NCBI RefSeq assembly: GCF_000143415.4
Contig: NW_003314323.1
Span: forward strand, 252,499-316,498
Source of the DNA: Selaginella moellendorffii
Taxonomy: Eukaryota > Plantae > Lycopodiophyta
Length of the DNA stretch: 64,000 nt
Reading direction: 5' to 3'
Shown: one piece after another, positions 3,728 to 27,708 of the stretch
Position numbering within the stretch: position 1 is the first letter of the stretch
Layout of the letters: every line of letters begins with the position of its first letter
Made by a program: the position numbers and the translations under genes
The notes under the pieces: model-generated
The model's database searches: none
What the model saw: the letters and a program-made list of their open reading frames with translations, nothing else
Told to the model about the DNA's origin: nothing

Positions 3728-3862
3728 GTATATATATATACAGCAGAAGTGGGCTGTATATGTATATACATATATATATATACATATACATATATATACA
3801 TATACATATACATATATATATATATACATATACATACATATATACATATGTATATATGTATA
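3728..3862. repeat. (TA)n/(TACA)n microsatellite
   Basis: Direct inspection. Confidence 0.95.
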
Positions 3863-4345: not shown

Positions 4346-5153
4346 TTTGTCAACTTCTGGCTCGTGCTGGGTGTGTAATTAGTTGGAGCACATTATTTAT
4401 ATGCACGTAGATCGAGAAGCTGTCTTCTCGCCGAGCACTTCTTCGTACGTCAGTTTGCCTCAAGATCAACCTTAAGCGATCAATCGATTGCAGGTTCCAT
4501 CCATCCCCAGGACACACGGATTAAAGCACGAGTCTCTCTCAAAGCAAACCTCGACACCTGGCACCAGTTGATTCAATGCCAAGCTCTGTCTTGGCATTGC
4601 ATGCCAGCAGCTTTCCCTGGAAAACAGTTGGATAGGACAATCTTTGTTCAGAGGCTCAAGCATTTAGCTGCTTGTCAATCACTTTAATTTACATCGATCT
4701 CTTTCGTTTGTGTACACTTGATCAGCGTCGATTGTGCAAACACTTCAAAATTTTGGCAGCCAGCTTCTTGTTTCGAAGACCGAGCTACAAAACTTTGAAA
4801 AGTATTAATACTCAGTAATTTATTTGAAATTCTCCTTTCTAGAAGGAGAGTTTTATGCGTTCAAGCTGTTTTTCTTTTTTTGACACCAAGCTCTTTTTCT
4901 TTTTCTTCTATAAGTTCATCGCTGGAAGTTTGTGATTTCTGCAAGTATCTCTTGATTCCAAAAAGAAAACCAACCGCAATACAAATTCAAAGAACTTGCT
5001 TGCCCCAGAAATACAAACACAGATATTTCAAACTGATAACTGCAAACTCGGAGGAGTTGGGAACACTCTCGCGGACTACAACATCCAAAATGAGTTTATG
5101 CTCCATCTGGTTCTGCGTCTCGCATGCAAATCATCGTCTCATGTTTTGGATAT

Positions 5154-5971
5154 TTAAAACTTGTTCATAAAACTTTTTAGCGATAACTCCAAAGACTCCT
5201 TGGCGAAGTGATCGATGTCCAAGGCCTGCAAACCCACTTAAAAATCCGAATGTACGATCATCAATGGAGAGAAGGACAAACCTTGGCACGGATGCAGATG
5301 CATACAACGCGCGAAGCATCATCGACCGAGACGGACGCGTCCTGAACAATCAGCTGGTGTTGGCGCAGAATCCACAGCACACTCAGCAAGAGCCTGGCCT
5401 GCATCCTGCAGCTCATGTTGACGAACACATCCGACTTGCATATGTGCAGCCCCAAGCTAGCACTCGATCCCGCTGCTGCCGCCATCCCCATCGCATTCCA
5501 CTTGGGCTTGGAAGGATCCATGGCCGCGCTCTTGCGGTGCTCGAGCAGCATGGATCTCGTCGCCGACAGCTGCTGGACTTGATTCTTGAGCGATTGGATG
5601 AGCTCCATCGTCCCCTGAACCACTCCGCATCGATCCATCTTTCCCGTGCAGCGCAAACAATCATTGATGCGAGAGTGATCAAGAAAAGCACAAGTATGGA
5701 TTGATCAGGATACCTTTGAGGCCTCCGTTGTTGGTAGCAGCGACCTCAGCCGATCATACAGCCCTTGCAGCTCTTTCCTTCGCTCCCTCTCCGACCATAT
5801 GTGATTGATCCGCTGCGCGTACGTCCGGGTCTTTCCCTGCGGAAGCGTCGCCGGGCCCAACCCAATGCGCGGATTAATGCTAGTAGCATTCAAGGGGCAA
5901 ACTCCATGACCCAGAAACACGGGAAGAAACTGATTCAAGCTTGAGCCCTCGCGCCTGACAGGCTTCACCAT
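5154..5971 (-). CDS. bHLH transcription factor A1 (ZHOUPI/subfamily Ib-like) with C-terminal ACT-like domain; exons 5971-5714, 5638-5282, 5225-5154 (228 aa)
   Basis: QRINHIWSERERRKELQGLYDRLRSLLP..K|MDRCGVVQGTMELIQSLKNQVQQL, then GLHICKSDVFVNMSC..LLLSVLWILRQHQLIVQDASVS. In-frame GT-AG junctions shared with the two paralogues. Confidence 0.9.
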
Positions 5972-6275
5972 GGATCGTAAACTTACACTCGAATGTGGTC
6001 GTCTAGACGAGAAACTCTCGCCCTCAAGAACTTACACTGGCTATTGCAATCAAGAAGGGCTTTCTCTCCTCATCTTCTCGAGCCACCTTTCGTTGGTGTA
6101 GTTCTGAAACGATCGGCGTGGATGTTGGATACTACGCAACATCTATGCCGAGCATACATTTGCTTTTGCCAGCCAGCACAAGACACGGTTATGATTGATA
6201 ATCTCTTTAATGCCAAACAATAATCGAACCACTTTATTTTGATGAAATAGATTGGCAGAAAGAGATGCTCTTTAA

Positions 6276-6277
<2 letters not shown>

Positions 6278-6338
<61 letters not shown>
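6278..6338. repeat. (CT)n(CA)n compound microsatellite at the 3' end of MYB-A1
   Basis: Direct inspection. Confidence 0.95.
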
Positions 6339-6735
6339 GATGGTACTGCTGCTACCCCTGACACTGTGGTAGAAGCTCAACTCTAGGCACTCGTCTTGCA
6401 TCTGGAGCTCAACCAGCATGTGCAGAGGACATGCCTTGCCGCACACCAAGCAGTCGCCACTAGAAGTGGTGCTTGCCACCGCCAAGTGATGATGATCCAA
6501 AAGCTGGACACCAGTGTTGCTGATGCTGCTACTGCTGCTGCTGCTTTCGTATGCCATGCTGCTGCTGCTTTCGTATGCCATGCTGCTGCAGGAGCTTTTC
6601 CAGACAATGCAATCCAGATTGCCATCCATCATCAATCGCTGTGCTTCCTCAACTCCCTCTAAACTCTTCTCACTGTCTTGGTGAGGGAGTGTCACTTGTG
6701 ATTGAAGAACTTCTTCCATAGCTGCTAGGGCTCCT
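6318..6735 (-). pseudogene. R2R3-MYB A1, C-terminal part (split by the TE block, frameshifted)
   Basis: Aligns to 26450-26848 (DSEKSLEG..MMDGNLDCIVWK..CLVCGKACPL). About 5-nt deletion near 6690 relative to copy 2. Confidence 0.9.
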
Positions 6736-7009
6736 TGTTAGGCACATAGTCAAAAGGAGGCTTAAGCATGTTAGGGTAAGGGACTTAACCTACTCTAAGG
6801 CTTATAGTGGAATGGCAGCATAGTGGAGCTTTTGAGGCAACTCAGGGGTGGTTGGGTGGTGAGGAACTTCAAGAGGATGTATCATTTGGAGCCATTCTCA
6901 TCTGCGCTATGGTTTGTTTGGAACTGCACCAACCTTCTCTTGCAGCTAGAGGCGGTTATGGTTGGCATTGTGGATTCAGTTCAAATATTAAACTTGAACA
7001 TAGCAATCA

Positions 7010-8524
7010 CGCAGTTCTACGACGCCGCAAACATAAGAAGTCGGTTAGGTTCTCTCGGACCTCCTGTGCATCCTCCGGCCCACGCAAGTCTTCCTATGAT
7101 TCTCCCTCAGCCACAATAAGATCCCCGTAATCTTCGAAAATCTCTACTTCCTTCAAGGCTTGAATGTGTTTCTCCCATGCTTTGATCTCGGCATTGATGT
7201 TTGTCTCACCAACATCAATCAAGAAGTTGTGCAAGATGCAACAACTTTTGATGATGTTCGGCAGGTACTTCGACTTGATCCTTTGTTTTTGATCCAAGCA
7301 TTTGAATTTCATTTTCAGGAGTCCAAATGCTTGTTCAATAACAATCCGGGCCAAATGGTGTTGCTGGTTGTACTCTGCCTCAGTCACCGTCAACTGGGAA
7401 CTTGTTTCAAATGAATAATTGAAAAAAAAAAAAAACAATCAATTTACCCAAGTGAGGAATCATCAAGTGCTGCTGCAGCTGGTAGCCTTTGTCTCCCACC
7501 AGGTATGGCTCAATCCACTCGTCAAAAGCAAACTCCCGAGGAACTGTGAGTAATTCCTTCGCTTGGATCTTGTGGCATAGCCTGGAGTTCCGAAAAACCC
7601 TCATGTCATGAACACTCCCTGGAAAAAAGAAAAAAAACCAATTAGATGTATAGAAGAAAAAAAGTAAAAGTAATTACCTGGCCAGCCTGCATAGATACTC
7701 AAGAACCTTTTCTGAGCGTCACAAACCCTCTGCAAGATCACCGAGTACCGTTTCTTTCGATCAAAGTAGCCCTCACCATCCGGGCCAACTGGTCGAATAA
7801 TCTCAAAATGTGTACAGTCGATCGTCCCAGCCACATTAGGGAGACAAGTCTTGGTGATTTGCTGAAAATCTGCCGCCACAGCTCTAACCTCCGCTGCTGT
7901 CTCTAGGAATCGAATCTTGTACCTGAGGCACTTAACGATTGCAATAGTTGTCTACACCACAATGTCATGTGCAGTGGCTTCCCCGATCCCAAACTTGTCA
8001 GACAGGTCGGAGTAGTCGGTGTTCTTGAACAACTTGTACAAGGTGACCCCCAAACGAACATCCACTGGCACTGCTCTCCTAAACTTTGTATCCTGCTTGC
8101 AAATTTCAGTCTCCAGAATGCCACAAAGCCCGAAGAATGTCTTCTTCTCCATCCTTAGCTTCCGCTTCCATCGACCAGGGTCATACAACTCCATGAAGAA
8201 CTTGCTCCATGTTGTCATACACCGCGGCTTCACCCACCAGAGACCGGCGTCAAGTTGCTTGGACAAGATTGCTCGACAAAGCTTGTCTTCGTCCTCCTCC
8301 TCATCCGGAAGAGTTTGTGCCACCGGGGTCTTGTCATCGATAATGGATTGAAAAGCCTCCACAGCGAGAAACAAAACTTGCAAAATAAGCAAGATTACCT
8401 TGTTCCTCAATAAGGCATTGATGACTGCTGCTTGATTGTTGAAAGAACCACGTTCCTCCTGAGCATCTCTTTGGTTTTCCCCGGAACCATCTTCTGTTTC
8501 CTCGGGTTGAACTGTTGCAAGATC
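7010..8524 (-). pseudogene. Harbinger DDE transposase (HARBI1-like), with introns and premature stops
   Basis: LRMEKKTFFGLC; GTIDCTH; YAGWPG..HDMRVF; YLVGDKGY; IEQAFGLLKMKF; CCILHNF. Stops at 7952 and 7094. Confidence 0.9.
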
Positions 8525-8628
8525 CTGAAAAAAAAAAAGGTTAGAAAAATCTAAAATATCATAGCCTAAACATAGTTTAGTTTAATATTAATAATTAACG
8601 TCCCCCTAAAATCCCGAAAACAAGACGG

Positions 8629-9917
8629 CTAACTCCTGGATGCAACCCCGTTCAAGAAGTTGGAGATGGAGCTTGCAAGGTTGGAGATGGCTCCAACTAA
8701 AACTGTTGCCTTTTCCTTCTCAGCTAGGCTATTCTCCTTCATGCAAACAATGCTCTCCTTTTGCCACGCTAGATTCTACTCATTTCGAGCAGCAATGAGA
8801 GCATTCCCCTCAGCAAGCAAAGTTGTCATGCTTTTCTCGGCCTTCTTCGGGTTCTTCTGCTTCCCTGAACTCCCTGGCACCTGTGTAGCATCTCCAAGAG
8901 GATCAACACCATCCGCGGGATCCTCCTCGTAAGCTTCCTCTTCCGGAGCATCTGAATCAGCAAGAAATGTTGGAGATGTCAATGCCTGCTTCGCTAGGAA
9001 TTCATCCATGATGTTGAAGTACTCGACTGGGAACACCTTCAAGTTCAGCTTCACCGGCATAAGTCACTTCACATCCTTGTGGCTCAAGCTAAAGTAGTTG
9101 GGGTTTCCAGTTTTCCTCTGGAAATCGCAAACACACTTGTAGTCGTTGCAAAGGTTGTTCCAGCGAGTCCGTCAAGCCTTCCAGTCCCGCTGCATGCCAA
9201 CAACCTGCATCTTCTTCGCAATCCTCTTCCAACGATTGGTTGCTGTCAACGTCATCTCCTCGCTGCCCCGCATTCCCCCGATCTTTCCAAGGTGATCTTC
9301 CCGTTTGAAATCAATGAGGGAAGCCGTCTCATCATCTCCCCAATTTTTCCCACGTTTCTTCCTCATTTTCTTCGCGACATGAACACCTACCTCCCCTTCC
9401 TCATTGTCATCGCCCTCCTCTTCATCACCCTGATCATCTTCTTCCTTGTTCAACAGCAACGTCGTCCTGCTCCTCCAAGTTATGAAACCAGAACTGCATG
9501 TACTGCTGTCCTGGTGACTGCTCCTGCTCCAGGTCACCTACTTTGCCACCCTAAACCCAAAACCACTCTCCTAGAATCTGAGCTAAACTCAGTTTGAAGC
9601 TTACCTCGTTAGTTGTCGTAGAAGAAAATTCAGAGAACAATCGAGTTCTAGAAGCCGTTGGGGGAGGCTACAGCTCCCCATGCTCCAGCTCCCCGTGCTA
9701 CAGCTCCCCGTGCTCTAGCTCCAAGTCCGCCCTGATTGAGGCCAAGATTCGAGAGATCGGCATCTCCACGGCCTCGGCCTCGAGGCAGCCTGCCTCCTCG
9801 AGCAACAGCTGGGCCTGGTGCTCGTCCTCCAGGCCCGGATGCTCCTCCACCACGGTTGCTCCTCACTCCACGAGCAGCACCTCCTCGCTGGATGCCACTG
9901 CCCCAAACCCGCACCAT
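8629..9917 (-). pseudogene. Harbinger Myb/SANT-like (trihelix-type) DNA-binding protein with stops
   Basis: RGKNWGDDETASLI...RWKRIAKKMQVVGMQRDWKA*RTRWNNL. Acidic N-terminus, coiled-coil-like C-terminus. The 5' boundary is uncertain. Confidence 0.8.
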
Positions 9918-10679
9918 CTCCTCGTCAAACCCTACAGCTCCTCCTTCGACTGCTCCTCCTTCCCCAAAATCAGCTGCTCCTCCTTAATCCACCAAATCCC
10001 CAACAGGATCTAACCCTAGGGCGATGACTACTGTCGGCTCCCCTGCCATAAAATGCCTGAGCTCACGGCAACTCGCAGCAAAAAACTGAAGCGCCCTAAT
10101 TAGGGCGCTGAAATCTTTGGGGAATCTCGGAGATTCCTTTTAAAAATATTTTAAGTTTAAAAGAACACCCCCCCCCCCCCCCCCCATCTTTTAAAATCGG
10201 TCTGGATGTTTTAAAAAGTGAAAACATTGTGTTAAAGTTAGCACTATGTGCGAATCAAAATGTTTTTAAAAAATATCCTAAATTTTAATGTAAAGTAATT
10301 TACTTTATTTTAAAACATAGTGCAAATGTATTCATCATTTAAATTTAACACATTTCAAGAATAAAGAGCAAGTGCAAATGGCTCCAATATAATTTAGAAA
10401 GATTAATTCTTCGTTTTTTTATGGCAGATCTTAACATTGATATTAGAAGCATACATCTTTGAAGTAGGCTTGTCATAATGGAAAAACACTTTCAAGTTAC
10501 TTGTTGTTTGTTCGTGACTTGGGGGACTAAGGCACGTGTGGCAGAGAAGCAGCAATACAAGATGTACTCGATGAGTTTTCTGATGTTTTTCCATCTAAAC
10601 TTCCTCATGGGTTGCCTCCATTACGAGGTGTGGAGCATAGAGCTAGGAATGTGGCTAATTTACTAATGTCCATTTCGGT

Positions 10680-12777
10680 TAAGTTATGTGGAGGAGTAAG
10701 AAGTTCAATAATAAGTCAAGGAGTTACTTGAGTTTGGATTTATTCATCCAAATAAGTCTTTGTTTGGTGCTCCGGTCTTGCTTGTGAAAAAGAAGAACAG
10801 TTCAATGCAAATATGTATTGACTACCGTGCCTTGAACAAAAAAAATAGTGAAGGATAAAATGCCAATGCCACATATAGATGATATCTTAGACAAACTTGG
10901 TGAAGTATGAGTGTTTACCAAGATTGATTTGAGAAGCAGATATCATCAAATTGCAATAGATGAAGCATTTATCTCTAAGATGGCATTTAACATAAGTTTC
11001 AAACATTTTGAGTTTATAGTTATGCCATTTAGTTTGACGAATGCTCCAAACACATTTACTCAGTTGATGACGAATGTATTTGGGCATTATCTTTATGAGT
11101 TTGTGGAGATTTTCTTGGACAATATTCTTGTTTTCAACAAAAATATGGAGGATCATAAGGTGCATTTGCGCAAGGTTTTTTTGTTACTTTGTGATAACAA
11201 ACTTTATGCGAAGAAGAACAAATATGAGTTTGCAAAGTTAGAGGTGGAATACCTAATCCATATTGTAATATTTAAGGGTGTCAAGACAGATCTAAGGAAT
11301 GTGGCTGCAATGGAGAATTGGCCTACACCAACTTCAGTGGCCGAATTATACAGCTTTCTTGGTATGGCTAGTGATTACTGACGTTTCCAGCATAAGTTTG
11401 TGGAGGTGGCTATTCCTTTGATACAGTTGTTATGCAAGAGTGTGCTATTCGAGTGGAAAAAGCCACAAGAGGAGATTTTTGTGGCACTGAAATGGTTGTT
11501 GAGCGAGGCTCTGGTGCTTTGCATTATTAATCCATCAAAACATTATAAGATGACATGCAATGCGAGTGGTTATGCACTATAAAAAGTTCTTATATAAGAG
11601 AGATAGCCTATTGCATATGAAAGTTAAACTTTGAATCCCATAAAATAACGTTATTTCCCATATGAACAAGAGTTACTCTCTATTGTTCATGCTTTGCGGA
11701 CATAGCAACACTATCTTTATAATGCAGTGTTCGTAGTGTTGATGGATCATAAACCACTTATGTACCTTTTTGAACAAAAGGAATTGAACATTAAACAAGC
11801 TTGTTGGATAGTCAAACTCATGGAGTTTGGGGAATTTCCCATTGAGCATTGCCCAAGAAAATCAAATATGGTGGCAAATGTTTTATCTCGTGTTTGTCAT
11901 GTGATAACATTACAAACATGGTTTTGTCATCATTTAAGTAAAGTGGTTAGTGAGTTTGGACAGTTAGTTGAGGTGCTTAGGCATAGGATGTTGAGGTGGC
12001 CTCTTTGCGCAACTAAATGGAAGATCATCTTTCTGATCGCACTACACTATTGCAAATGTTACTGAAGTCATCAACATCATATTTCATATGGTCTTCGGAT
12101 TGTGAGCAGATGTTTGAGGATCTCAAAGAGCTGTTGACGACTCCTCCACCCCTTTCTCATAAGTAGGATTCTCTATTACAATAGCCGTGTATATTTACTA
12201 TGAGTGGATGTGTTAATTACTCAAGTTTTATTCCACTATCATAATCATCCAAAAGCCGATCATTTTGGGGGGAAGAAGACATATAAGTTGATTAAGTGAA
12301 ATTTTTATTGGAGGAATATAAAGGCTCATATCCTCGAGTATTGTAAATCATGTAAGCTTTGTTAGCGAGTAAAGGTCCCAAGGGAAAAGCCAGAGAGACT
12401 TTTGCAACCTTTACCTATTCCTCAGAGCCATTAGTATAGTATCTCTATGGACTTCATTATTTGTTTGCCATGAACACAGAGGCAAAAGAAGCAAATATGG
12501 GTCATAGTGGATCAGTTGATAAAGTATGTGCAGTTGTTGGTTTTTTGGAAAACTATTACTACCTCAGACTTGGTTGCAATCTACTTGGAGAAGGTTTTTC
12601 CTGATTTTAGTTTGCTAGAGGACATCATTAGTGATCGAAATTCAAATTTCACAAGTGGATTTTGGAAGAGCTTTGCGAAGGCTATACAAAGGACTTTGAA
12701 ACTCTCAAGTGGAAATCATCCTCAGATGGATGGGCAAACTAAACATGTGAATCAGGTGGTATAGAATATGCTATATT
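10680..12777 (+). pseudogene. pol: Gypsy pol (RT-RNaseH-integrase), degenerate
   Basis: FTKIDLRSRYHQI; FEFIVMPFSLTNAPNTF; FLDNILVF; MDHKPL; IISDRNSNFTSGFW; HPQMDGQT. Confidence 0.92.
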
Positions 12778-12782
12778 GTAGC

Positions 12783-13930
12783 TGTCGCGCATGTGACTTT
12801 GGGTATCGAAAATTACCTGTCGACCAGTCCTTACGGACACTCTTACCTTACTGCCACGATGGCAGGAGGTCGGTATTGCTGGACCCTTTATCAGTCCCTC
12901 TTGTTCAAGTGTTAGTAAACTGGGCTTAGCATCTGTACTTGGCCAGATGAGCATAAGGAAGGAATTCTTAAGTGTCTATTTAGCTGAGCATACTCGGCCC
13001 GGCTTGTTAGTTCTCTTTTGCTCTGTCTTGCACTGGCTTGACAAAAACCCTCGCGTATTGAGATTGGTCCCTCAATATCGCTGGATGATAGCTTACTGTG
13101 TCTGCCAAACACCCTCGCTATCATGCCCTTTGTGTTAGTCTCATTTCGGTCCCAAATGCTATTTATGGAAAGTGTCCAGATTTGCTCATTTGGCATATCT
13201 ACGGAATGTAGAGTTCGGCCTGAACACAATAGTGTTCGTCCCATGTCCAAATTCACAATCTAGGGACATTCCATATTTAGTAAGTTTCGAGCTTGTCCCA
13301 GAGACTAACTCCTAGTACTAAGGGAGGCTTGGGGTGAAAGCCCAAAGCGTGTGTTCCTCAAGGGGGGGGGGGCTGTGGGGGGTTCCAAATGTATAGTAGG
13401 GATAATGGGTAGATTGGGCATGGCCAACCAACCTGAGGCATAGTCTAGCTCCCGCTTGCGTGCCTGTCCTTGTTCTGCGTCCGGCTTGGGTCTAAGCCCA
13501 AGTTCCATTCCATGCTAGTTGGTGGAGTACCCATATCCTCGTGTTAGGCCACCGGTATGCCGAAATAGCGCCAGACTCCGTTTGGCTCCGTTTTGCGTGC
13601 TAGTCCTGGCATTAGGATGCTGGTTACTCTAGGACTGTTCCAAGTCGCTCCGGGCCCCTGTTCCTTCGCTCCTTGGGCTTTATGCTCGGGAGTTACTCCG
13701 TGGTTCGGTTCCGTCACTCCTTGGCTCCATGCTTGGGGGTTTTGGCACCGTTCCTTCGTTCAGTGGTCCAAGGCCCTGAACCTTGGGTTCCTATGGACAC
13801 GTGGCATGGACACGTGACATGTGACACGTGGCATCTGTCACGTGGCACAAAGAGGGTTTAGGTTCCGCTTCATGGTGTTATCCTATGGTAAATCACCATA
13901 GGATAAAGGGTCAAAACCACGTGCGCTACA
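12783..13930 (+). repeat. 5' LTR of the LARD-like element
   Basis: TGTCGCGC...GCGCTACA; direct repeat of 18909-20056. Confidence 0.97.
13798..13846 (+). promoter_or_regulatory. Four tandem G-box/ABRE motifs (CACGTG) in the LTR; also at about 19924-19972
   Basis: CACGTG at 13798, 13811, 13825 and 13839, mostly as CACGTGGC. Function not shown. Confidence 0.55.
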
Positions 13931-16900
13931 TTTGGTATCAGAGGATGAGTCTCAGCGAGTACTATTCAATGAGATTGGGCAACTAGTCTCATTGCATACG
14001 CAGAGATGAAAACGATGGTCCGAGTGGGTACACGTTTGGTGCAAAGGGTTCACATTCGTTCCTTGGGTATGGTTTTGGTTACCTTTTGTACCTAATAATG
14101 TGAGCTTGCTCTTGGGCTCATAAGAGGGATTAAGTTGTTCCAATTTGCACGAGTTTGCGCTTGGGCTCGTGTGTAAGGCACATTAGCAACTCAAGGTTAC
14201 ACTTTGAGTTGGCAGGATTAATGTTAGCCTATCAGTGGTTCCATGAGTTGTTCCATATACCATGGGTAAAAGAAAACCTTCCCTGAGTTTGCTATGAGTG
14301 GCAAATAGGCTGGTCCGTAGTTGTTTAGCACGGCACTAGTGGATCCTTCCTAGGCATGATTACAAGTGAATCAACCAAGACTGTAGGGATTAGTCTATTG
14401 GTTCAAGTAGTCATTGTCGTGCTCTCTTATAAACTTTTCTTGGATTGGACTGAAGGCAGTGCGAATGCAAGCTTGAGGTGTAAGTCAAAGATGAGACCGA
14501 AAAGAGAGTCATCAGGGACGAAGGATCAAATACGTAAATCATTTTCTCTTCTTGGAGAGATGATTTGCAACGAGGTGTTGACTCATTGCTCATGTTCACA
14601 TTATGCAATCAAGAGTCCCTACCTTGATGCATCTTGGAGATGATGGTCTTACAAATGGTGAGTTGTGGGATGGATAGCGGTGAAGCGCTAAACCATTTTG
14701 TCTAAACTTGCTATTGAAGACTTGGGTTGCAATGCTCAATTCTTTTCCGGGGAACTTTGCTGTTGCTCCTTGAGTAGCTTGGTGTTGGATTAGTTTTGAG
14801 TTTGGTCAGATAGAGAGTGGCATGAGCTTGTCTGTGTTGTGAACAAAAGTTGGTGGTATTTGGTGTTATAAATCTCTATCAGTGGAGTGTGGCATTTATG
14901 TTGCATTTTATTGAATTGAGTTGACACTTGATACTTACGTAAACCTTTGTAGTAGTGACATGGGTGATATTTGTAGTGTTGCTCGATTGATAATCAAGTC
15001 ATTGTGATTTCTATATCATATCCATGTGATAATGAGCAATGTGTTTACGAAGTTGCTTGGTTAAATGATGATCAACCCCAAAGTGGTTGATGGTGAAGCT
15101 AGTCTACTTGCAAGTAGTAGCATTGTAGTAGCTTTGACGGGATTCTCGATAATGGTCCATTATACTAAGCTTAAGTTGGTTCCTTGTTTCCTTGAGTTTG
15201 CCCATAAGGTGTTGGAAAAGGGTTGTAGCATTCATTTGCTATAACTCATCGGTTGATCCGTTAGCACTTGGAGTAGATTATTGGATGGAGAAGGTGTGAG
15301 GTTGATGCATTGATATCGCAAGCACTTGTGTTAGTGGAAGTGGCATCGTTATTTCAAGTGATAAGGAATTTTCCTTGGACCTTGATTTTCCATATCATTT
15401 TTCTTGTTAGTGTTTTGGCTTCACATTGAATCTTGAAAGTGGTTGAAGAAGAGTGTTAGTGCAATGTAGATATCCAAAGATGTGGTCTTCGTGATCAAGC
15501 CTTGGATGTTCACTTTGCATTTTATGCGGTGTTGGATATCGGAAGTATGGGCAAAAAGATGTTCGAGGCTTAAGCATACTATGGGTCATGAGAATTGGTG
15601 TCAAGGTGAACCTATGTGAAGTTGTTGGTAGGAGGAAGTTGGTTGAGTCTTGAGAGTTTGCATTCCTGGACTGAGAGTCATTCTTTCTCTGGGATGGAAA
15701 ATTTCCACAAATTTTCTTAGACTTCTCCAATGGCTGATCTGTTGATCACTTTGCCGAAAACCATTCCGTTTTCATAAGCCAGTACAAATTAGTGAAGGGG
15801 TTGGAGTTAACTTCAGTTGGCTTAGACCTTAGTAAGTAGTTTGTATGATGCGGCCCGAAAGGGATACTGACTTTTAGGGCTAAGGCAATTGAGTTGGATA
15901 GAGTCTGGAGTTGGTGTAGAAAAGTGGCCTTTACACTTTTCTAGAAAGGTGACCCTTGTGCCTTTCTTTTGTAGCGTTATGCTTGGTGGTAGGTTGCACT
16001 TTGCATTTCGTTCGACTCTATAAGAGTAATGAGCTCTCACTGATCTTGACTTGGTCTTGGTGGCCTTACGCCTTGGCTGAGGATGGTGATGTTCAACTTA
16101 GTTGTTTGAGTTTGAGATGTTGGTACCTGTATTGTAGCTTTGTCTATGAGGAGATTGTGTACCGATATGAGTCCATTTCATGGTCTTCACTTTAGTTTCG
16201 ACTAAGTGTTGGTCATGTATAGCTAGCCTCTTCAAGGCATGCTCAGAGCTAGTGGCTAAATGCATTGGTGAGCTTATCGCGGTTGAGTTGGATTTGAGTG
16301 GTCATTTAGTTCGTGCTTGTCCATAAACCTTTATCTCATACCTAGGGTATCAGGTTCATGTTGGACAAGTATATGACTTGATGGCATGAGTTTAGTGTTT
16401 GGGTCTTGTGGAGACAAGTTGAAGAGTGGTTGTTAGTTGCTTTGCGACTAGTGATTGCTTGTAGACTTCGTCGAGGACTGTTGACACTTGCTTCGCTCGA
16501 TGATATTTTAGCAGTGATGGGTTTGCTTTACCGGATGGGGTTGCGGAGGATCATGTCGTTAGACTTACATGGGTTTTCCATGTTGGTATGTCGACTTTAC
16601 CTCTGCTGATATCATTTGGTTGCATTTAGTTCATAGTGTTGCATTTCATTGAGTCTTGGACGTGATGAATCACTCCTTGATGAAGTGTTATCTGTAACTG
16701 AGTTTTGTTAAAGGATTGGTCTTGGATACTGAGTAAAGTATCTCCGACTTTGGTTAGCTTGGTTGCAAGAGAGTTTTGAGTGGTGATTCACTCTTGCTTT
16801 CTTTTAGCTTTGTTATGGTGTTGATGGCATTGAAGTGATGCCTTGTCGTTGATATTATTGATGTTGAGATTCAAGTGAGATGAGATGTTTATCCTTAGGA

Positions 16901-18908
16901 TTGACATTGAGTTTCATTAGTCTTGATGAAGATATTGTTGATGATTTGGCTATAGCTTTGTGTTATTAGCATTCGTGCATTTGCTAGTTAGCAACTGTGT
17001 TGACGTTCAAATGAACTGAGTGGCAAGTTTGAGTTAGTTGTGTTCTAGACCAAGTTGTTTAGTAGAGGTTGAGCTTTGAGCTTTTCTTTGAAAAGTGATT
17101 TAGTCATGGACTATGCTAACTCTACAAGTGGGAGAGTTAGTGATCGATATTGGAAAGTTTGAATCCTTATTGGATTTGAGTTGGAATATATCGATCATTG
17201 ATGGTTCTTCTTGTGCTTGTTATGAAGTGAGTTACGTCTTGCTATAAATGGATTCATGGAGGATCGTTTGGTGATCACTTGTCAAGCATAGATTCATTAT
17301 GCTTAGCTTTTGGATTGATGCAGACATGCTCTTCATTAGCTTTGGCATTATGGAGTTTAGCTTATGGATGTGTTGAGGAATATATTGTGGGTTACGCCAT
17401 GATTTCTTCTTTAGCATTGAAGTTAGTTCATGCAAGACTTGTGATCATTGTTAGGCAAGACTTAGCTATAGACTTCTTCGAACTTTTGGTTCTTTGAGTT
17501 TTATGCTCATTGTTCCATTTGTTAGGAGTTGTTGGGGGAAGCATTTTGGCTCATTAGCTTCGATGTTGACGTTAGTCTTTGCATCTAACAATCATTGGTG
17601 GTGATTGACTATCATCTAAGATAGTTGATTATCCTTGTCAAGGGTTTTGCTTGATTATTGTTGGTATAGAATGATTTTCTGTTCTTCGGGATAGTAGATT
17701 CTTTCTTCAATGATGATTATGCATTTCTCTATTGATAGGATGATTAATGATCTTTTATGGTGGTTAGTTGTTTTCTTTGATGGCTTGTGGCTTTTTGCAA
17801 TATCACATGTTCTTTGTGATTTGCTCTGGATTGGTCTCTTGGGTTTGAGACATCAATAGGATGTTGCTAACACTTGCTTAGGCAACTTAAGTTCCTTGGT
17901 ATTGTTGGCTGAGATCTATTCAGATTAGCTAATGTGATAGTTGACATGAATGAGTGTTTGTTGGTCTTACCACATTCATTCTGTTCTGTTGATTATTGCT
18001 CGAGTTAGTTCTGATAGGTTGGGATGTTATTTCCTTCGGGTGATACATTCGCGAGCATTGTGCTTGTTAATCAATGATACTTTGTGTTCTTTAAGTTATT
18101 TCTAGTAAGTTGTTGGCTTACTGTCTGCTATCTTCGGTAGTTAAGTTTCATTATTGAGTTTACTTGATGATATACTTGCTATTGAATTTCGTTGAATGGT
18201 GATCCTATGTTTCCAAAAATGATGATCTTGGTGATTCCTCTCTACTATAATACTGGTTTATCGGATGATAACTTGCTTAGAATACTTTTGTGTTCTACTT
18301 TAAGATATAGTCACTGATAATTAAGACTCTAAGATATCATTGTCTCTGACTTTGATATTGTCCATCTATTGATCTTTGCGTTTGGGCCAGTAATAGGCAG
18401 ACTGGCTTCGGCACTTCGTGTGCATGTTGAAATCTCTAGTCATGGGGTAGCTACTGTCGACTGGTCACATAACCCGCCTCTCTGTCGATGTTCCTTATTC
18501 CGTTTGAAAGGGCGTGACCGTGTAAACAACTCTAACTGCCTGTTTACAGTAGTCTATCTAAACCTTACCGACGGGTTTGGTTTCTTTGCTCAGGAGGGTT
18601 GGGGCCTCTGGCTTCTCTCTCTAGGTCTCTGCGGGCAGGGGCATATCACACTTTTGTAGCCGGGTAACACCCAGAGCAGCAAGGGTGGCTGACTCCGTTG
18701 GTCATTTCCTTGTCGGCGACGGCCAGAAGGTGTCTGAGCTGGTAGCACATCCGTGTTAGACAAAGAGGTTGCCTCCTAACTCATTTAAGTTGGTGCATTT
18801 CTCACATAGTGTGAGTACTGTGAACTTTTTCTGGAGTTGTTTCCTTGGCGGTATTCTAGACTCGAGTATGCATCGACGAGGACGTCGATCTTCTCTAGGG
18901 GGGGAGAG

Positions 18909-20056
18909 TGTCGCGCATGTGACTTCGGGTATCGAAAGTTACCTGTCGACCAGTCCTTACGGACACTCTTACCTTACTGCCACAATGGCAGGAGGTCGGT
19001 ATTGCTGGACCCTTTATCAGTCCCTCTTGTTCAAGTGTTAGTAAACTGGGCTTAGCATCTGTACTTGGCCGGATGAGCATAAGGAAGGAATTCCTAAGTG
19101 TCTATTTAGCTGAGCATACTCGGCCCGGCTTGTTAGTTCTCTTTTGCTCTGTCTTGCACTGGCTTGACAAAAACCCTCGCGTATTGAGATTGGTCCCTCA
19201 ATATCGCTGGATGATAGCTTACTGTGTCTGCCAAACACCCTCGCTATCATGCCTTTTGTGTTAGTCTCATTTCGGTCCCAAATGCTATTTATGGAAAGTG
19301 TCCAGATTTGCTCATTTGGCATATCTACGGAATGTAGAGTTCGGCCTGAACACAATAGTGTTCGTCCCATGTCCAAATTCACAATCTAGGGACATTCCAT
19401 ATTTAGTAAGTTTCGAGCTTGTCCCAGAGACTAACTCCTAGTACTAAGGGAGGCTTGGGGTGAAAGCCCAAAGCGTGTGTTCCTCAAGGGGGGGGGGGCT
19501 GTGGGGGGTTCCAAATGTATAGTAGGGATAATGGGTAGATTGGGCATGGCCAACCAACCTGAGGCATAGTCTAGCTCCCGCTTGCGTGCCTGTCCTTGTT
19601 CTGCGTCCGGCTTGGGTCTAAGCCCAAGTTCCATTCCATGCTAGTTGGTGGAGTACCCATATCCTCGTGTTAGGCCACCGGTATGCCGAAATAGCGCCAG
19701 ACTCCGTTTGGCTCCGTTTTGCGTGCTAGTCCTGGCATTAGGATGCTGGTTACTCTAGGACTGTTCCAAGTCGCTCCGGGCCCCTGTTCCTTCGCTCCTT
19801 GGGCTTTATGCTCGGGAGTTACTCCGTGGTTCGGTTCCGTCACTCCTTGGCTCCATGCTTGGGGGTTTTGGCACCGTTCCTTCGTTCAGTGGTCCAAGGC
19901 CCTGAACCTTGGGTTCCTATGGACACGTGGCATGGACACGTGGCATGTGACACGTGGCATCTGTCACGTGGCACAAAGAGGGTTTAGGTTCCGCTTCATG
20001 GTGTTATCCTATGGTAAATCACCATAGGATAAAGGGTCAAAACCACGTGCGCTACA
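18909..20056 (+). repeat. 3' LTR of the LARD-like element
   Basis: Preceded by a polypurine tract and followed by TSD GTAGC. Confidence 0.97.
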
Positions 20057-20926
20057 GTAGCATTGATTAAAGGCAAGGACAATGAGATTTATATCTTCCA
20101 TTGGTGCAATTTGATTACAATAATAGCCAACACAATGGAACCAAGCTAAGTCCTTACTTTGCCATGTTTGGAAGGTATTCCTGAACAACAATGGAGTTGG
20201 GATTGCATTTAAGTAAGAACATTCAAGATAAGCTTGATTCTGAGGTGATTAATCTGGCCACAGTACTTGATGAGATTCTGATGGTATACAAATGGGATTT
20301 ATAGGTAGCTCAAGATAGAGTAAAGAAGTTTGCTAATGAGCATTACCAATTCCGGGAATATAAAGTGGGTGATCTCATCTTCATGTGAGTGATCTTTCCA
20401 TTAAGTGAACAGTGGAACACTTTGGTGCCTTTACGAACAAGGAAGAGTGACAAACTTTCTTATTAATATACTCGTCCATATGAAGTGTTGGAGTGTATTG
20501 GTAAAACGGTTTATTAGGTGCGGTTGCCAACTAAGGTGAAAATTCATCTGGTATTTTATGTCAACCAATTGAAAAATATACTATCTTGGAGTGACAAGCT
20601 CAATGCCTCCTTAATATATATAGCTATGGAAGATGGACCAAGAGCTTGAGCAAGGTTTCCCAAAAAGAGTGATCACAAGTATAACTCATCCTTGGGACAA
20701 AGATTTTGTTAGGGGGGAAGAATTGTTAAACACTAACTTTGACCATGTGGTTAACATTGGTCAAAAGGAAGCTCAAAGGTATATTAAAGCATGTTAAGGT
20801 AAGAGACTTAACTTAAATGGTGGCATAATGAAACTTTTTAAATAGTTCAAGGGTAGTTGGGTGATGAAGAATCTCAAGTTGAGGCATAGCATAGTTTAAG
20901 AAGGCTAAATTGTGCCAGATCATAAC

Positions 20927-21205
20927 CTCCTCTCTTTGGCCTTGAATCTGACGTGGGAGTTCCAATAGTTCTTGACATTGTTGTCCATTCTCCCAGGAAG
21001 TTGAGTAGCAAAGTAAGCCCACCTACACAGCAAAGGGAGAGATGTCGATCTGAAGCCAAACGCTCGAGCAAAAGTAAAGTACCTGTTTCCAACCAATTCA
21101 TGCAGTTGACAGAGAGTTTCCTCCTCCTGCTCGCTGAATTTTCCGTGCCTCAACTCTGGTCTCATCCATCTCAGCCTGCAACTCTTGCCAGTTCTCTGTT
21201 CTAAG
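20927..21205 (-). pseudogene. R2R3-MYB A1, R2/R3 part (exon 1 missing, 9-bp deletion)
   Basis: [38 protein letters not shown]|WAYFATQLPGRMDNNVKNYWNSH. Lacks NYL compared with A2. Confidence 0.9.
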
Positions 21206-21296
21206 CTCTCGAAAATAAAAGACAAAACAGCAATCCCAATCTCCTGTGACAGTGGAATTAATAAAAACTTGGGCATGCTCATGGTCGGTTGATAGA

Positions 21297-22080
21297 TCAG
21301 CCAGTGATGAGAGCGTAAAGTGACAATTCCAAAGATTCCCTGGCCAAGTGCCTGATGTCCAGTGCCTGGATAGAGAAAATGAAGAGAAGAAGAACCAAAA
21401 AGGAAACTCCAGATAATAGAAGAAAGATCTAGATTTCTTATACCTTGCTGCGAATGCAAAGGCTAGCCATGGCTGGACGGTTCTTGGATCCCGGTCCTGG
21501 CACCGATAATTCTCCCCGATCGATCGAGATTGTCGCGTCCTGGACGAGCAGCTGGTGCTGCCGCAAGATCCACAGCACGCTCAGCAGCAATCCCTCGCGC
21601 ATACTGCAGCTCATGCTCAAGAACTTGGATTCACAGATGTGGAGCCCCACGGGGCCGCCACCACGATCCATCACCGGCAGCGAGGAGCTTGCGATCATCA
21701 AATTCCTTGATTTACAGCGGCGTCGATCCTCGAGCACGGATTTCCTGAGCGCCAGCTCCTGGATTTGGCGCTGCAGTGACTGGATCAGCGCCATTGCCTC
21801 GGCGATGACCTCGCATCGATCCATCTGTACAGCAAAGAAGCAAGCAAAGCATTTAGCCCTTTGTTTGTTCTTGGCTGAGAATCCTAGCGATCGATCGAAT
21901 GTGATGGATGGAGCGAGAGATTACTACCTTCCAGGATTGCGATTGGAGCGGTAGCAGCACGCGCAGTCGATCATACAGCTCCTGGACCTCCTTCCGCCAC
22001 TCGCGCTCCGACCAGATGTGATTGATCCGCTGCATGTAACTCCGGCTCCGCCCTCCCTGCGCCGGAATTAGATGATCCAT
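21297..22080 (-). CDS. bHLH transcription factor B; exons 22080-21928, 21824-21444, 21365-21297 (200 aa)
   Basis: QRINHIWSEREWRKEVQELYDRLRVLLP|MDRCEVIAEAMALIQSLQRQIQEL. Same ACT-like tail and last exon (ALDIRHLARESLELSL) as A1 and A2. Confidence 0.88.
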
Positions 22081-22272
22081 GGTCGCGATCCTCCTCCTCT
22101 CGCGCGAAATCTTCGAAATCTTTTGGAATAGTCAGATCCAAAGGAATTATAAATATTCCGAACTTTCTTTCCAGGGAATCACACCGTACGCACGGTGTTG
22201 AAGCCCAGACTTGTGGTACGATGCTTGCAATGCCCGTGATCTGGGCGAAGTCCGTGGATCATGCCTTGGCTT

Positions 22273-23033
22273 CTACCTCATGAAGAACTGCCAGACGACG
22301 CAGCCAAGATCGCCATCCATCATAGGGCTTTGACCGTCTGATTGTAGCGATGCTGATGATCCAGCACTAAACTTCGCCGCTGGAGACGAGGCTGGTTCTT
22401 CTGCTGGATCGCTTTGGAGGAGGTGAGTATCGCGAAACTCTTCTCCTGCGGGGTCTGGAATCTCCGGCGTGGGAGGAGATGGAGGTGGGTCGCTTCTTTC
22501 ATGATCTTGAGAAACGGATGAGTGGGCTACAAGTGCCTTGTTCCTGATGCGCGAGTTCCACTGGTTCTTCACATCGTTGTCTGTTCGTCCGGGAAGCTGG
22601 GAAGCAATGTAAGCCCACCTGTGATTGATATCAGTGATGAGGATAAAAAAGTGATGGTGCCGGATCAAACACCTGTTTCCAACAAGCCCATGGAGCTCGA
22701 TGAGCTTTTGATTCTCCTCGTCGCTGAATTTCCCACGTTTAAGGTCCGGCCTCAAGTAGTTCATCCACCTTAGTCTACAGCTCTTCCCACTTCTTTGGAG
22801 CCCTGCAAGAAAGCAGCGAAATCAGTCCTATAGAAAACTGAGTGAGTGAGATCGTCAATCAAACCCGCAAGCTTGGGAACAGTGGTCCATACGTTTCCAC
22901 ACCCGTGCTGCAGTATGAAATTCAGCAATAGCTCGTCCTCTTTGGGTGACCACAGTCCCTTCCTCACGATCGAGCTCGAGCTCGTCGCGCCTCCCAATTC
23001 ATGATCGTCGGGTTGTTCCCTTCTCGAGACCAT
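22273..23033 (-). CDS. R2R3-MYB transcription factor B; exons 23033-22865, 22802-22673, 22618-22273
   Basis: [23 protein letters not shown]|[29 protein letters not shown]|[21 protein letters not shown]. Canonical R2R3 intron positions. Confidence 0.93.
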
Positions 23034-24315
23034 GGATCGGTGAAGAACTTTGTGACAAGGATTTCAAAGAAGATGAATTCATTTCAAGCTTGCTCTTTTG
23101 GTCATGGATCAAACTCATGGAAGGACAATATCAGTTGACACACATTTCTCACATTCCAACCACCATACACAAAAACACGGTAATGTTTTCATTTTTTTTC
23201 TTCTTTCTTCTTCTTTTTGTCCCAGCTTCATATTAAGAATCTGACAATAACTTTATTTTCTACTGTCCCAAGGTACAAAGCTTGAAAGTCCTTTCCGCAA
23301 GCTGGCCCTTTGACAGAGATTGCAAGATTGAGGCCAATGTTTTAGATCTATAGTTCTGAGTACAGTGTTTCACCTTTTTTGAGTCGTAATACCTTAAGAT
23401 GAAATTACTATATAAAAATAAATTCTACAAATCCAGTTTCTAAAATCTTTTTTGTGACAGAGAAATGATTAAAGAAATGCATTATGTCAAGTAACACATA
23501 TTGGATTATAACTCATGCTTGAAAATTTCATTTCAAAATATATACCATCTTAGCAGTATATGTCAAAACAATTAATATGCATCACAGAATGTTTTTCTTA
23601 GAAGAAAATCACTCAGCTTGAAATAATTTTAGTATTTTCTTTTTAACAAAGAATAGCATCATTTCAGAAACGTTTAGGTTCAGGTTTAGTAATGGGGATT
23701 AGTATAAGTATATTCTAGGCATAAAAAATCACCATTTTTTTTATAAAAGGGAGAAGATGTGGAAGTGGTGGTCATAGCAGCAAAGTATGGATATAGTTTC
23801 CTCCAATTTTCATGCTTGAACTTCACACCCAACACCTGATAAGGTGATAGAATTTCCACTCTCCAATCATTTTCCAAAACTAGAAGTGATAAATGGTCAA
23901 AGACTAAAAGAGAGAGTCCTAAAGAATGAGATTCATTCCCCACTAATGTGTCCATGCTTTCTCATAGAGGTGGTGACAATCCTATTAGATATGGACTAAC
24001 TTTGGTTTACAGGATTTTGATACACTATGAAATTCTTTCATTTCTTTGCATCCCCCACATTAATATAACTACTTTTAATTAAGAAATTTTTTTAATTGCA
24101 AACATGCTGTGCAGCAATATAATTTCTCATTTTTATTGCCTTTAAATTTCAATTACCAGTTTTTTTTTCTTCGCATTAGAGATTAGCTTTAAAAGTAAAA
24201 ATAAAGCAATAAAAGATGGGTCTTATTAACTATTTCTGTACCTTCACTTTAAATGAACTTGATAATAGTATATATTTAATTCAGTTAATTTAAAAATTAA
24301 TGTATTCAATGGATC

Positions 24316-24335
24316 TATATACATATATACATGTG

Positions 24336-24388
<53 letters not shown>

Positions 24389-24402
24389 ATATATATATAT
24401 AT
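24316..24402. repeat. (TA)n(TG)n microsatellite
   Basis: Direct inspection. Confidence 0.95.
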
Positions 24403-25198
24403 GATTGGAGCACATTATTTATATGCACATAGATCGAGAAGCTGTTTTCTCGCCGAGCATTTCTTCGTACGTCAGTTTGCCTCAAGATCAATCTTAAGGG
24501 ACCAATCGATTGCAGGTTCCATCCACCATCCATGCTGCTCCCAGGACACCGTGCGATTTAACGATTCTGCTCAACGACACCTGGCACGAGTTGATTCAAT
24601 GCCCAGCTCTGTCTTCCAAGCTGGCTGGCATTGCATGCCAGCAGCTTTCCCGGAAAACAGTTTGATGGGGCAATCTTTTTTCACAGGATCAAGCATTTAG
24701 CTGCTTGTCAATCACTTTAATTTACATCGATCTCTTTCGATTGTGTACACTTGATCAGCGTCGATTGTGCAAACACTTCAACATTTTGGCAGCCAGCTTC
24801 TTGTTTCGAAGACCGAGCTACAAAACTTTGAAAAGTATCAACACTCAAAGCAATTTATTTGAAATTCTCCTTTCTGGAAGGAGAGTTTTATGCGTTCAAG
24901 CTGTTTTTCCTCTTTTGACACTAAGCTCTTTTTCTTTTTTCTATGAGTTCATCTCTGGAACTTTGTGATTTCTGCAAGTATCTCTCGATTCCAAAAAGAA
25001 AACCAACCGCAATACAAATTCAAAGAACTTGCTTGCCCCAGAAATACAAACACAGATATTTCAAACTGATAACTGCAAACTTGGAGGAGTTGAGAACACT
25101 CTCGCGGACTACAACATCCAAAAGAAAAGGAGTTTATGCTCCAGCTGGTTCTGCGTCTCCATGGTGGCATGCAAATCATCGTCTCATGTTTTGGATAT

Positions 25199-26005
25199 TT
25201 AAAACTTGTTCACAAAACTTTTTAGCGATGACTCCAAAGACTCCTTGGCGAAGTGATCGATGTCCAAGGCCTGCAAATCCACAGACAAAATCCTAAGAAA
25301 ATCAATGGAGAGATGGAGAAACCTTGGCACGGATGCAGATGCATGCGACGCGCGAAGCATCATCGACCGAGACGGACGCGTCCTGAACAATCAGCTGGTG
25401 CTGGCGCAGAATCCACAGCACACTCAACAAGAGCCTGGCCTGCATCCTGCAGCTCATGTTGACGAACACATCCGACTTGCATATGTGCAGCCCCACGCTA
25501 GCACTCGATCTCGCTGCTGCCGCCATCGTCATCGCATTCCACTTGGGCTTGGAAGGATCCATGGCGGCGCTCTTGCGGTGCTCGAGCAGCATGGATCTCG
25601 TCGCCGACAGCTCCTGGACTTGATTCTTGAGCGATTGGATGAGCTCCATCGTCTCCTGCACCACTCCGCATCGATCCATCTTTCCCGTGCAGCGCAAACA
25701 ATCATTGAGTGATCAAGCAAAGCACAAGTGTGGATTGATCAGGATACCTTTGAGGCTTCCGTTGTTGGTAGCAGCGACCTCAGCCGATCATACAGCCCTT
25801 GCAGCTCTTTCCTTCGCTCCCTCTCCGACCATATGTGATTGATCCGCTGCGCGTACGTCCGGGTCTTTCCCTGCGCAAGCATCGCCGGGCCCAACCCAAT
25901 GCGCGGATTGATGCTAGCAGCATTCAAGGGGCAAACTCCATGATCCAGAAACACGGGAAGAAACTGACTCAAGCTTGAGCCCTCGCGCTTGACAGGCTTC
26001 ACCAT
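25199..26005 (-). CDS. bHLH transcription factor A2; exons 26005-25748, 25679-25323, 25270-25199 (228 aa)
   Basis: Near-identical paralogue of A1 with an intact frame and splice sites. Confidence 0.9.
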
Positions 26006-26328
26006 TGATCGTAAACTTACACTCGAATGTGGTCGTCTAGAAGAGAAACTCTCGCCCTCGAGAACTTACACTTGCTCTTACAATCAAAAAGGACTTTCTC
26101 CCCTCCACCAATCTTCTCGACCGCTCCCCCACCACCTTTCGGTGGTGTAGTTATGAAACGATCGGCGTGGATGTTGGATACTACGCAACATCTACGCCGA
26201 GCATATATTTGCTTTTGCCAGCCAGCACAAGACACGGTTATCATTTTAACGACAGATAATCTCTTTAATGCCAAACAAACCACTTTATTTTGATGAAATA
26301 GATTGGCAAGAAAGAGATGCTCTTTAAT

Positions 26329-26409
26329 ATCTCCTCTCCTCTCTGTCTCTCTCTCTCTCGTATAGATGCTACTCTCTCTCTCTCCTCTCTCTCTCTCGTA
26401 TAGATGCTA

Positions 26410-26450
<41 letters not shown>
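26329..26450. repeat. (CT)n tract with duplicated TAGATGCTAC units
   Basis: Direct inspection. The MYB stop-codon context is repeated three times. Confidence 0.85.
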
Positions 26451-27367
26451 TAGATGCTACTGCTGCTACCGCTGACACTGTGGCAGAAGCTCAAATCCAG
26501 GCACTCGTCTTGCAGCTGGAGCTCAACCAGCGCTCGCAGAGGACATGCCTCGCCGCACAGCAAGCAGTCGCCGCTAGAAGTGGTGCTGGCCACCGCCAGG
26601 TGATGATGATCCAAAAGGTGGACACCAGTGCTGCTGATGCTGCTGCCATTGCTGCTGATGCTGCTGCTGCTGCTCTCGTATGCCATACCGCTGCAGGAGC
26701 TTTGCCAGACAATGCAACCCAGATCGCCATCCATCATCAATCGCTGTGCTTCCTCAGCTCCCTCTAAGCTCTTCTCACTGTCTTGGCGAGGGAGTGCTGT
26801 TTCACTTGTGATCGAAGAAGAACTTCTTCCAGAGCTGCTAGAACTCCTCCCCTTGGCCTTGAATCTGACGCGGGAGTTCCAATGGTTCTTGACATCGTTG
26901 TCCGTTCTCCCAGGAAGTTGAGTAGCAATGTAAGCCCATCTACACAACGAAGGGAGAGATGTCGATCCGAAGCCAAACACTCGAGCAAAAGTAAAGTACC
27001 TGTTTCCAACCAATTCATGCAGTCGACAGAGAGTTTCCTCCTCCTGCTCGCTGAATTTTCCGTGCTTCAACTCCGGTCTCAAGTAGTTCATCCATCTCAG
27101 CCTGCAACTCTTGCCAGTTCTTCGCAGGCCTGGAACTCGAAAAGCCACACAACAACAATCGGTCATCAGAAACTTGCAAATTCCAACTCTGGAAAGCTTA
27201 CCTGCAAGCTTGGGCACGGAGCTCCAGACTTGATATCCATACTGCAGGATGTGCTTCCTTAGAAGCTCGTCCTCTTCAGGAGACCAGAGTCCCCGCCGCA
27301 GTTTGCTGGACACTGCAGCATCGTCTCCCTCGTACTCTTGTTTCGAGGCTGTCTCAACTGAACTCAT
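26450..27367 (-). CDS. R2R3-MYB transcription factor A2; exons 27367-27202, 27129-27000, 26939-26450
   Basis: LRRGLWSPEEDELL..WSSVPKLAG|[26 protein letters not shown]|[21 protein letters not shown]. The 72- and 60-nt introns are in frame, which explains the continuous 320-aa ORF call. Confidence 0.93.
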
Positions 27368-27708
27368 CCTCCCAACTTCCAGGAAATCGGAAGCAAACAC
27401 CCCGACTTCCAATCCAAGCTCTCTACGAAGGAATTGTTCCCCCTTCTGCTGTTTCTTTGTCCTTTTCCAACTTGAAAACGATCCAAGTCATGACAAGGGA
27501 TCGGGTGACACACATTTCTCAGGAATTTAGTAACACGCTTCATGCAAGGCATCTTTCTCTGTGCCCCACACGGTGCCTTTTCTCTTAGCTTGTGTCTGGA
27601 TGAGGCTCTGCAAAGCTGGAAAGTTCTCACCAGAAAAAAGAGTGAGAGATCAGAAATGCGCGAGAACAACAGAACAACTTACACTTGCGATGATTCCTGC
27701 GTCGGCAG

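Follow-up and report, generated by a model that had tools for sequence, protein, structure and literature searches.

A described system close in composition to the locus reported here is the MYB-bHLH-WD40 (MBW) complex, which brings together the same two transcription-factor classes, an R2R3-MYB and a subfamily IIIf basic helix-loop-helix (bHLH) protein such as GL3, TT8 or maize R; we know of no MBW partners whose genes are neighbours. The known bHLHs of subfamily Ib, a second point of comparison, pair with other bHLHs (FIT, ICE1) and are not known to do so with the MYB product of an adjacent gene; the ORG2 and ORG3 names used below denote bHLH38 and bHLH39. Within that subfamily, ZHOUPI/bHLH95 has been assigned to Ib(1), whereas Ib(2) takes in the IRO2 group (PMC2839125). 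Tandem clusters of plant transcription-factor genes have also been described, an example being the bHLH cluster BIS1, BIS2 and BIS3 of Catharanthus (PMC7833464). In this study, we analysed a stretch of 64,000 nucleotides (nt) of the Selaginella moellendorffii genome (contig NW_003314323.1, positions 252,499 to 316,498; hereafter the window), in which the minus strand carries, between positions 5154 and 27367, three co-oriented pairs each consisting of an R2R3-MYB gene followed by a bHLH gene. We consider it rather probable that these pairs belong to a copy-number-variable, lineage-specific tandem array of a two-gene block that went through two rounds of duplication and whose genes are transcribed separately. 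As in the BIS cluster, tandem duplication of regulators has produced an array of paralogues, some of which are decaying, but clusters of the BIS type repeat a single family, whereas the unit here comprises two families in fixed order and at two time depths. Arrays of one transcription-factor family are common; a fixed MYB-then-bHLH unit kept through both an ancient and a recent duplication is unusual, and we found no report of a linked MYB-bHLH pair or unit in the literature.

Window position x corresponds to record position 252498+x on scaffold GL377627.1 of assembly GCA_000143415.2. The rightmost pair begins with MYB-A2 (26450-27367; exons 27367-27202, 27129-27000 and 26939-26450), an intact R2R3-MYB of 261 residues that is annotated by NCBI at this length. 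From its stop codon a spacer of 444 nt (26006-26449), partly made up of (GA)n, leads to the ATG of bHLH-A2 (25199-26005; exons 26005-25748, 25679-25323 and 25270-25199), whose intact product of 228 residues has an ACT-like domain after the bHLH and matches XP_024545238.1 of S. moellendorffii with 100% identity. MYB-B (22273-23033; exons 23033-22865, 22802-22673 and 22618-22273) has an intact frame of 214 residues, and its stop lies 192 nt from the ATG of bHLH-B (21297-22080; exons 22080-21928, 21824-21444 and 21365-21297), an open frame of 200 residues. The third MYB gene, MYB-A1, is a pseudogene, as the first-pass annotation of this sequence had stated: its 5' remnant (20927-21195) has no exon 1, a 9-nt deletion in exon 2 and an exon 3 cut by transposons, beyond which only the C-terminal region is found (6318-6735). 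Its neighbour bHLH-A1 (5154-5971; exons 5971-5714, 5638-5282 and 5225-5154) keeps an open frame of 228 residues with intact GT..AG introns and 94% identity to bHLH-A2. Our gene models on the minus strand agree with the gene order, strand, coordinates and spacing given in that annotation, and also with its claim that A and B share intron positions, the phases being 1 and 2 in the MYB genes and 0 and 0 in the bHLH genes of both types. All seven introns inside 21400-27399 are backed by joints in RNA, those of MYB-A2 being 27130-27201 and 26940-26999.

This anatomy is real and richer than had been described, as the window holds only half of the array, which continues past the window's left edge. 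The repeat unit is a segment of ~5.9 kb (27121-21194) comprising a truncated MYB-A, bHLH-A, MYB-B and bHLH-B. Its mark is a tandem-duplication junction (21193-21195) at which the 3' flank of the B pair meets MYB-A sequence starting 8 nt inside exon 2, and this junction recurs in every unit (window 21193/21195, L015 and L013). To the left of the window, L015 carries a further B-type pair (10001-11744) and a second truncated, transposon-split MYB-A with an open bHLH-A frame (12298-17498); the last B-type pair (P0291, P0294) lies ~25 kb further left and is followed by a 3-beta-HSD/epimerase gene. The order on GL377627.1 is A2 - B - dA1 - B'' - dA1'' - B', amounting to three units and six pairs, and three distinct MYB-B proteins of 214 residues are encoded on this scaffold. 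On GL377585.1, which represents the other haplotype and is 96.8% identical in the A2 region, the order is A2 - B - dA1 - B', with two units and four pairs. One common junction together with three units on one haplotype and two on the other identifies a tandem segmental-duplication array with copy-number variation, and the additional pairs beyond the window's left edge and on GL377585.1 bear out the earlier claim that MYB and bHLH were duplicated as one block. The difference between haplotypes matters for counts of MYB or bHLH genes made from this two-haplotype reference assembly.

The linkage of the two genes is older than the recent duplication. Comparison of A with B gave a synonymous divergence (dS) of 1.26 and a ratio of nonsynonymous to synonymous change (omega) of 0.30 for the bHLHs, and a dS of 1.8 for the MYBs, or 1.48 with an omega of 0.11 for R2R3 alone, so that dS is 1.2-1.8 over both genes; these values indicate purifying selection on both MYB and bHLH. 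The recent round is young, with a dS of 0.046 between bHLH-A1 and bHLH-A2. MYB-A and MYB-B group in one clade of an R2R3-domain tree that includes the 118 best database hits, with a Shimodaira-Hasegawa-like approximate likelihood ratio (SH-aLRT) support of 99, and the A and B bHLHs do so with a support of 100 in a tree of 70 bHLHs, 66 of which are other hits. Closest to the bHLH clade is an unlinked ORG3-like gene of S. moellendorffii. When all the copies are placed in trees, A and B are separated with 100/100 support for MYB and bHLH alike, and thus the congruent phylogenies that the first-pass annotation had suggested as a check were indeed obtained, as was the greater age of the linkage that it had deduced.

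Only the outermost pairs of the array, A2 and the terminal B', are intact on both haplotypes with both members seen in RNA. Between them lie decaying copies, in which the MYB and the bHLH of one pair do not degenerate in step. Every later A copy is without a complete MYB, and bHLH-A1 is open in both copies on GL377627.1 and frameshifted on GL377585.1, which explains the odd NCBI model P0123. The bHLH-B of the window, a copy without NCBI annotation on this haplotype, has a one-codon deletion and an Arg-to-Trp replacement in the DNA-contacting basic region (codon 21999-21997), at a position that is Arg in all sister copies and in all RNA. The stop codon of bHLH-B'' is lost and several radical substitutions are present, and bHLH-B on GL377585.1 has a premature stop.

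We propose that the array descends from an ancestral neighbour pair in which a divergent R2R3-MYB with the two canonical introns stood head-to-tail before a small bHLH with an ACT-like domain. An ancient segmental duplication would have produced the A and B pairs, and a recent one would have copied the ~5.9-kb segment reaching from MYB-A exon 2 to just past bHLH-B; because that segment starts in exon 2, the later A copies would have been born with a MYB that has no exon 1. The unit counts of the two haplotypes, three here and two on the other, would then be due to unequal crossing-over. Each gene would form its own transcription unit, with the bHLH promoter placed in the 192-445-nt spacer that also takes in the 3' end of the MYB gene; the A2 spacer would hold the 3' end of MYB-A2 along with the promoter and 5' untranslated region of bHLH-A2. 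The MYB would be expected to bind DNA through R2R3 and probably to activate via an acidic-hydrophobic C-terminal motif. The bHLH would likewise bind DNA, and most likely dimerises through its HLH and ACT-like domain with another bHLH, by analogy with subfamily Ib proteins.

Canonical R2R3 repeats are present in MYB A2 and B, each having the two adjacent Myb repeats of an R2R3-MYB, and Pfam Myb_DNA-binding was found in all three MYBs (8.8e-27 for A2, two matches in B). Conserved introns serve as a criterion of land-plant R2R3-MYB subgroup III (PMC7785938), and MYB-A2 and MYB-B both carry them. Outside Selaginella, no hit exceeds 69% identity over the R2R3 domain, the hits being MYB61-, Hv33- and MYB86-named proteins. 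A pattern search with the R3 bHLH-binding signature [DE]Lx2[RK]x3Lx6Lx3R had no match in MYB-A2 or MYB-B, and by eye 3 of its 6 fixed positions differ in MYB-A2 and 5 of 6 in MYB-B, in agreement with the earlier statement that the MYB is not of the MBW type. The tails of MYB A and B are unrelated except for one shared motif, the C-terminal MMDGDLGC[IV]VWQ, which is absent from all of the other 287 proteins examined.

The bHLH proteins also differ from those of MBW complexes, being only 200-228 residues long, with a bHLH domain that begins at residue 50 or earlier. Pfam HLH scored 26.8 bits in bHLH-A1 and bHLH-A2 and 19.9 bits on the exon-1 piece of bHLH-B, just below the cut-off of 20.7 bits, and each bHLH had an ACT-like match of 19-22 bits, below cut-off. 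As Pfam gave only these HLH and ACT-like matches, no bHLH-MYC_N or MYB-interacting N-terminal region was found, which upholds the first-pass view that the IIIf region is lacking; the basic region has the His-Glu-Arg residues typical of G-box binders. The first-pass view that the tail is ACT-like is supported by a structure model. The AlphaFold model of bHLH-A2 has a long second helix followed by a beta-beta-alpha-beta-beta-alpha domain with predicted local distance difference test (pLDDT) values >90, and Foldseek superposed this domain on the ACT-like crystal structures of the MBW bHLHs GL3 and maize R (9c7n, 9c7o) with template modelling (TM) scores of 0.84-0.87, root-mean-square deviations of 1.4-2.0 A and an E value of 4e-6. 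On this structure model, the bHLH is predicted to carry a C-terminal ACT-like domain, a fold that would be shared with the MBW bHLHs.

A likeness of the bHLHs to ZHOUPI and subfamily Ib had also been suggested. That they are short bHLHs of the subfamily I kind stands, as they resemble Ib in their small size, in the position of the bHLH close to the N-terminus and in having an ACT-like tail, but membership of Ib itself is only probable: the best hits are named ORG3-like, bHLH36-like, bHLH95-like and bHLH126, proteins named bHLH94 and bHLH99 score as well, and the tree of 70 bHLHs was built without Arabidopsis reference sequences. The Selaginella bHLH also stands apart from the Ib proteins in that its identity to any non-Selaginella protein is at most 38% in an exhaustive search of representatives. 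In the protein collections searched, no orthologue of either gene was found outside S. moellendorffii, and a word-indexed search of 5.8 billion proteins passed straight from the S. moellendorffii copies to generic R2R3-MYBs for the one gene and to bHLHs of 28-41% identity for the other. On this evidence the pair seems to be either lineage-specific or fast-evolving.

Several points weigh against an array of separately transcribed genes as we have described it. The assembly dates from the 2010 era and contains both haplotypes, which may have biased the copy numbers; RNA support is sparse, with 21-36 raw reads per run and the remainder assembler contigs; joins were judged among the contig pieces listed, and rare read-through over the 192-nt B spacer is possible; and both genes have been retained in both ancient copies, still under purifying selection, which fits the correlated keeping of interacting partners better than two independent retentions. 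If the first of these points were taken to its end, the extra units would be two haplotypes stitched in tandem by the assembler and the true locus would be one A and one B pair, as might be suspected from a two-haplotype draft (GCA_000143415.2) whose scaffolds disagree on the number of units. This we regard as improbable. Nucleotide differences between units amount to 4-10%, more than the ~3% between the allelic A2 regions, and the units carry private insertions and mutations, among them a truncated MYB-A with a shared transposon insertion, a long terminal repeat (LTR) element in one copy and differing disabling mutations; for these reasons we read the units as real paralogues with copy-number variation. 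RNA, in addition, bears letters diagnostic of distinct copies. Where RNA covers the B pair, it agrees at 26 of 28 diagnostic sites with the terminal B' pair of GL377585.1; we therefore rejected it as a sign that the window's copy is expressed, and no RNA specific to the window's own B pair was seen among the RNA on 21400-27399.

The first-pass annotation had further regarded the pairs as operon-like and possibly co-transcribed, and had proposed a search of RNA for co-expression and for dicistronic or fusion transcripts. The locus does resemble operons and polycistronic mRNAs in having co-oriented genes only a few hundred bases apart (spacers of 192-445 nt), but spacing of this kind is ordinary for this genome, as 17 unrelated gaps between coding sequences in the S. 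moellendorffii loci examined spanned 41-3246 bp (median 342 bp), and we rejected it as a sign of coupling. What sets the locus apart from operons is that no common transcript was detected and expression is uncoupled. In two raw stranded RNA runs and two contig runs covering 21400-27399, no read, joint or contig linked a MYB to its bHLH. RNA depth is zero at 26200-26399 in the A2 spacer, a stretch that is informative only in its lower part since 26330-26480 is repeat-masked, and the 5' ends of bHLH contigs lie 14-57 nt before the ATG, that of bHLH-A2 at 26062. In both raw stranded runs MYB-A2 is covered 2-5x and bHLH-A2 not at all, and in run X1 the MYB-A2 contig has a depth of ~77 compared with ~3 for bHLH-A2. 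The runs of study P1 contain nearly all MYB-A2 words and only 16-20% of bHLH-A2 words, those of studies P2 and P3 35-58% of bHLH-A2 words and about one third of MYB-A2 words; the levels of the two genes are thus uncoupled between studies. MYB frames also end in stop codons, NCBI annotates separate proteins, and a Myb domain was found in none of the top ten bHLH relatives scanned (0/10). With no MYB-bHLH joint in four runs, co-transcription or fusion was rejected: an obligate common transcript can be excluded, low coverage leaving room for rare read-through, and a single transcription unit, whether yielding a dicistronic mRNA or a spliced MYB-bHLH fusion protein, is very improbable. Separate transcription is the reading we retain.

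A different kind of junction was seen upstream of MYB-A2, where an X1 contig of 2005 nt and depth 77 merges the gene with more than 1.1 kb of upstream sequence (27399-28570), towards a Methyltransf_21 (FkbM-type) gene at a distance of 342 bp. Contigs of neighbours thus do become merged here, yet not between MYB and bHLH. For MYB-A2 and its methyltransferase neighbour, the merged contig points to transcription that overlaps or reads through.

Separate mRNAs would still be compatible with adjacent MYB and bHLH proteins that cooperate as a complex or as co-regulators, A with A and B with B, their linkage keeping co-adapted alleles together; a partnership between the two proteins would be plausible, and we regard such cognate cooperation as possible though doubtful. 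In its favour, all four genes have been kept since the ancient block duplication with an omega of 0.11-0.31, the MYB and bHLH trees are congruent, the MMDGDLGC[IV]VWQ motif is conserved in otherwise unrelated MYB tails and not found in the other proteins examined, and in the outermost A2 and B' pairs both members remain intact on each haplotype and occur in RNA. Retention of all four genes is the sole observation that hints at functional coupling. Set against this are the MYB's want of a known bHLH-binding motif and the bHLH's of a MYB-interacting region, the opposite movement of MYB-A2 and bHLH-A2 levels between studies, and the independent decay of young copies, in which the MYB was lost from A1 copies and the bHLH damaged in B copies. 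A lasting adjacency, moreover, needs no selection, because there is hardly any space for a breakpoint within 192-445 nt.

Nor is the ancestral adjacency remarkable. S. moellendorffii has a total of about 22,000 genes. Its R2R3-MYB genes number about 16 (PMC7785938) and its bHLH genes about 100 (PMC2839125). From these figures the probability of one chance MYB-bHLH adjacency anywhere in the genome is of the order of 0.1, and a single such event is therefore unremarkable. The first-pass annotation had proposed looking for the adjacency in other Selaginella, lycophyte and fern genomes. Among the relatives covered here, which come from S. moellendorffii itself and two bryophytes, it was absent, a result that speaks against cognate pairing as well as against the operon-like reading: no annotated MYB lies within 10 kb of the four nearest bHLH relatives at any of five loci (the ORG3-like and bHLH99 genes of S. 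moellendorffii, one locus of Riccia and two of Physcomitrium), and tblastn detected no unannotated MYB at four of them (ORG3-like, Riccia and the two of Physcomitrium). Deep conservation of the adjacency was accordingly set aside as a candidate, on negative evidence that is weak, since orthology of the bryophyte bHLHs is uncertain. A narrower form of the partnership idea is that the proteins meet through a new, non-MBW interface, for instance with MMDGDLGC[IV]VWQ docking on the bHLH ACT-like domain, and that A and B are co-evolved cognate pairs under tight linkage; we think this unlikely. The tandem array of separately transcribed genes, which is not an operon, has ordinary spacing and has half of the window's copies decaying, nonetheless allows the question whether two linked regulators are partners to be put to a natural test, as cognate and non-cognate A/B combinations and copies with one member lost occur in one genome.

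The insertion that splits MYB-A1 is a 14.2-kb transposon block (6736-20926) inside exon 3, flanked by a target-site duplication CTCCT and containing Harbinger and gypsy fragments. PIF/Harbinger remnants include DDE_Tnp_4 frames at 7094-7438 and 7601-7879 and a Myb/SANT-like partner frame at 9172-9537, and a gypsy-type reverse transcriptase/RNase H fragment lies at 10911-12065. Nested in the block is an LTR retrotransposon (12783-20056) that looks intact, with LTRs of 1148 bp that are 99.4% identical, TG..CA ends and a target-site duplication GTAGC. Neither the sister unit (L015) nor the other haplotype has it, which marks the insertion as very recent.

Some smaller observations concern the RNA collections and the spacers. 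Of the A2 pair's exact 31-letter words, 21-65% occur in runs X10 and X18, which carry two other organism codes and could come from close relatives or be mislabelled samples. The duplicated spacer between the A and B pairs includes a segment of ~570 bp that is inverted between its two occurrences (3778-4352, an inverted copy of 23837-24402) and adjoins a (CA/TA)n microsatellite. On GL377585.1, the region equivalent to this inverted segment forms a larger palindrome (L013 15001-20385), and the same scaffold has a 4.6-kb insertion (L013 772-5356) exactly at the equivalent of window 21284/21285, between bHLH-B and the MYB-A1 remnant.

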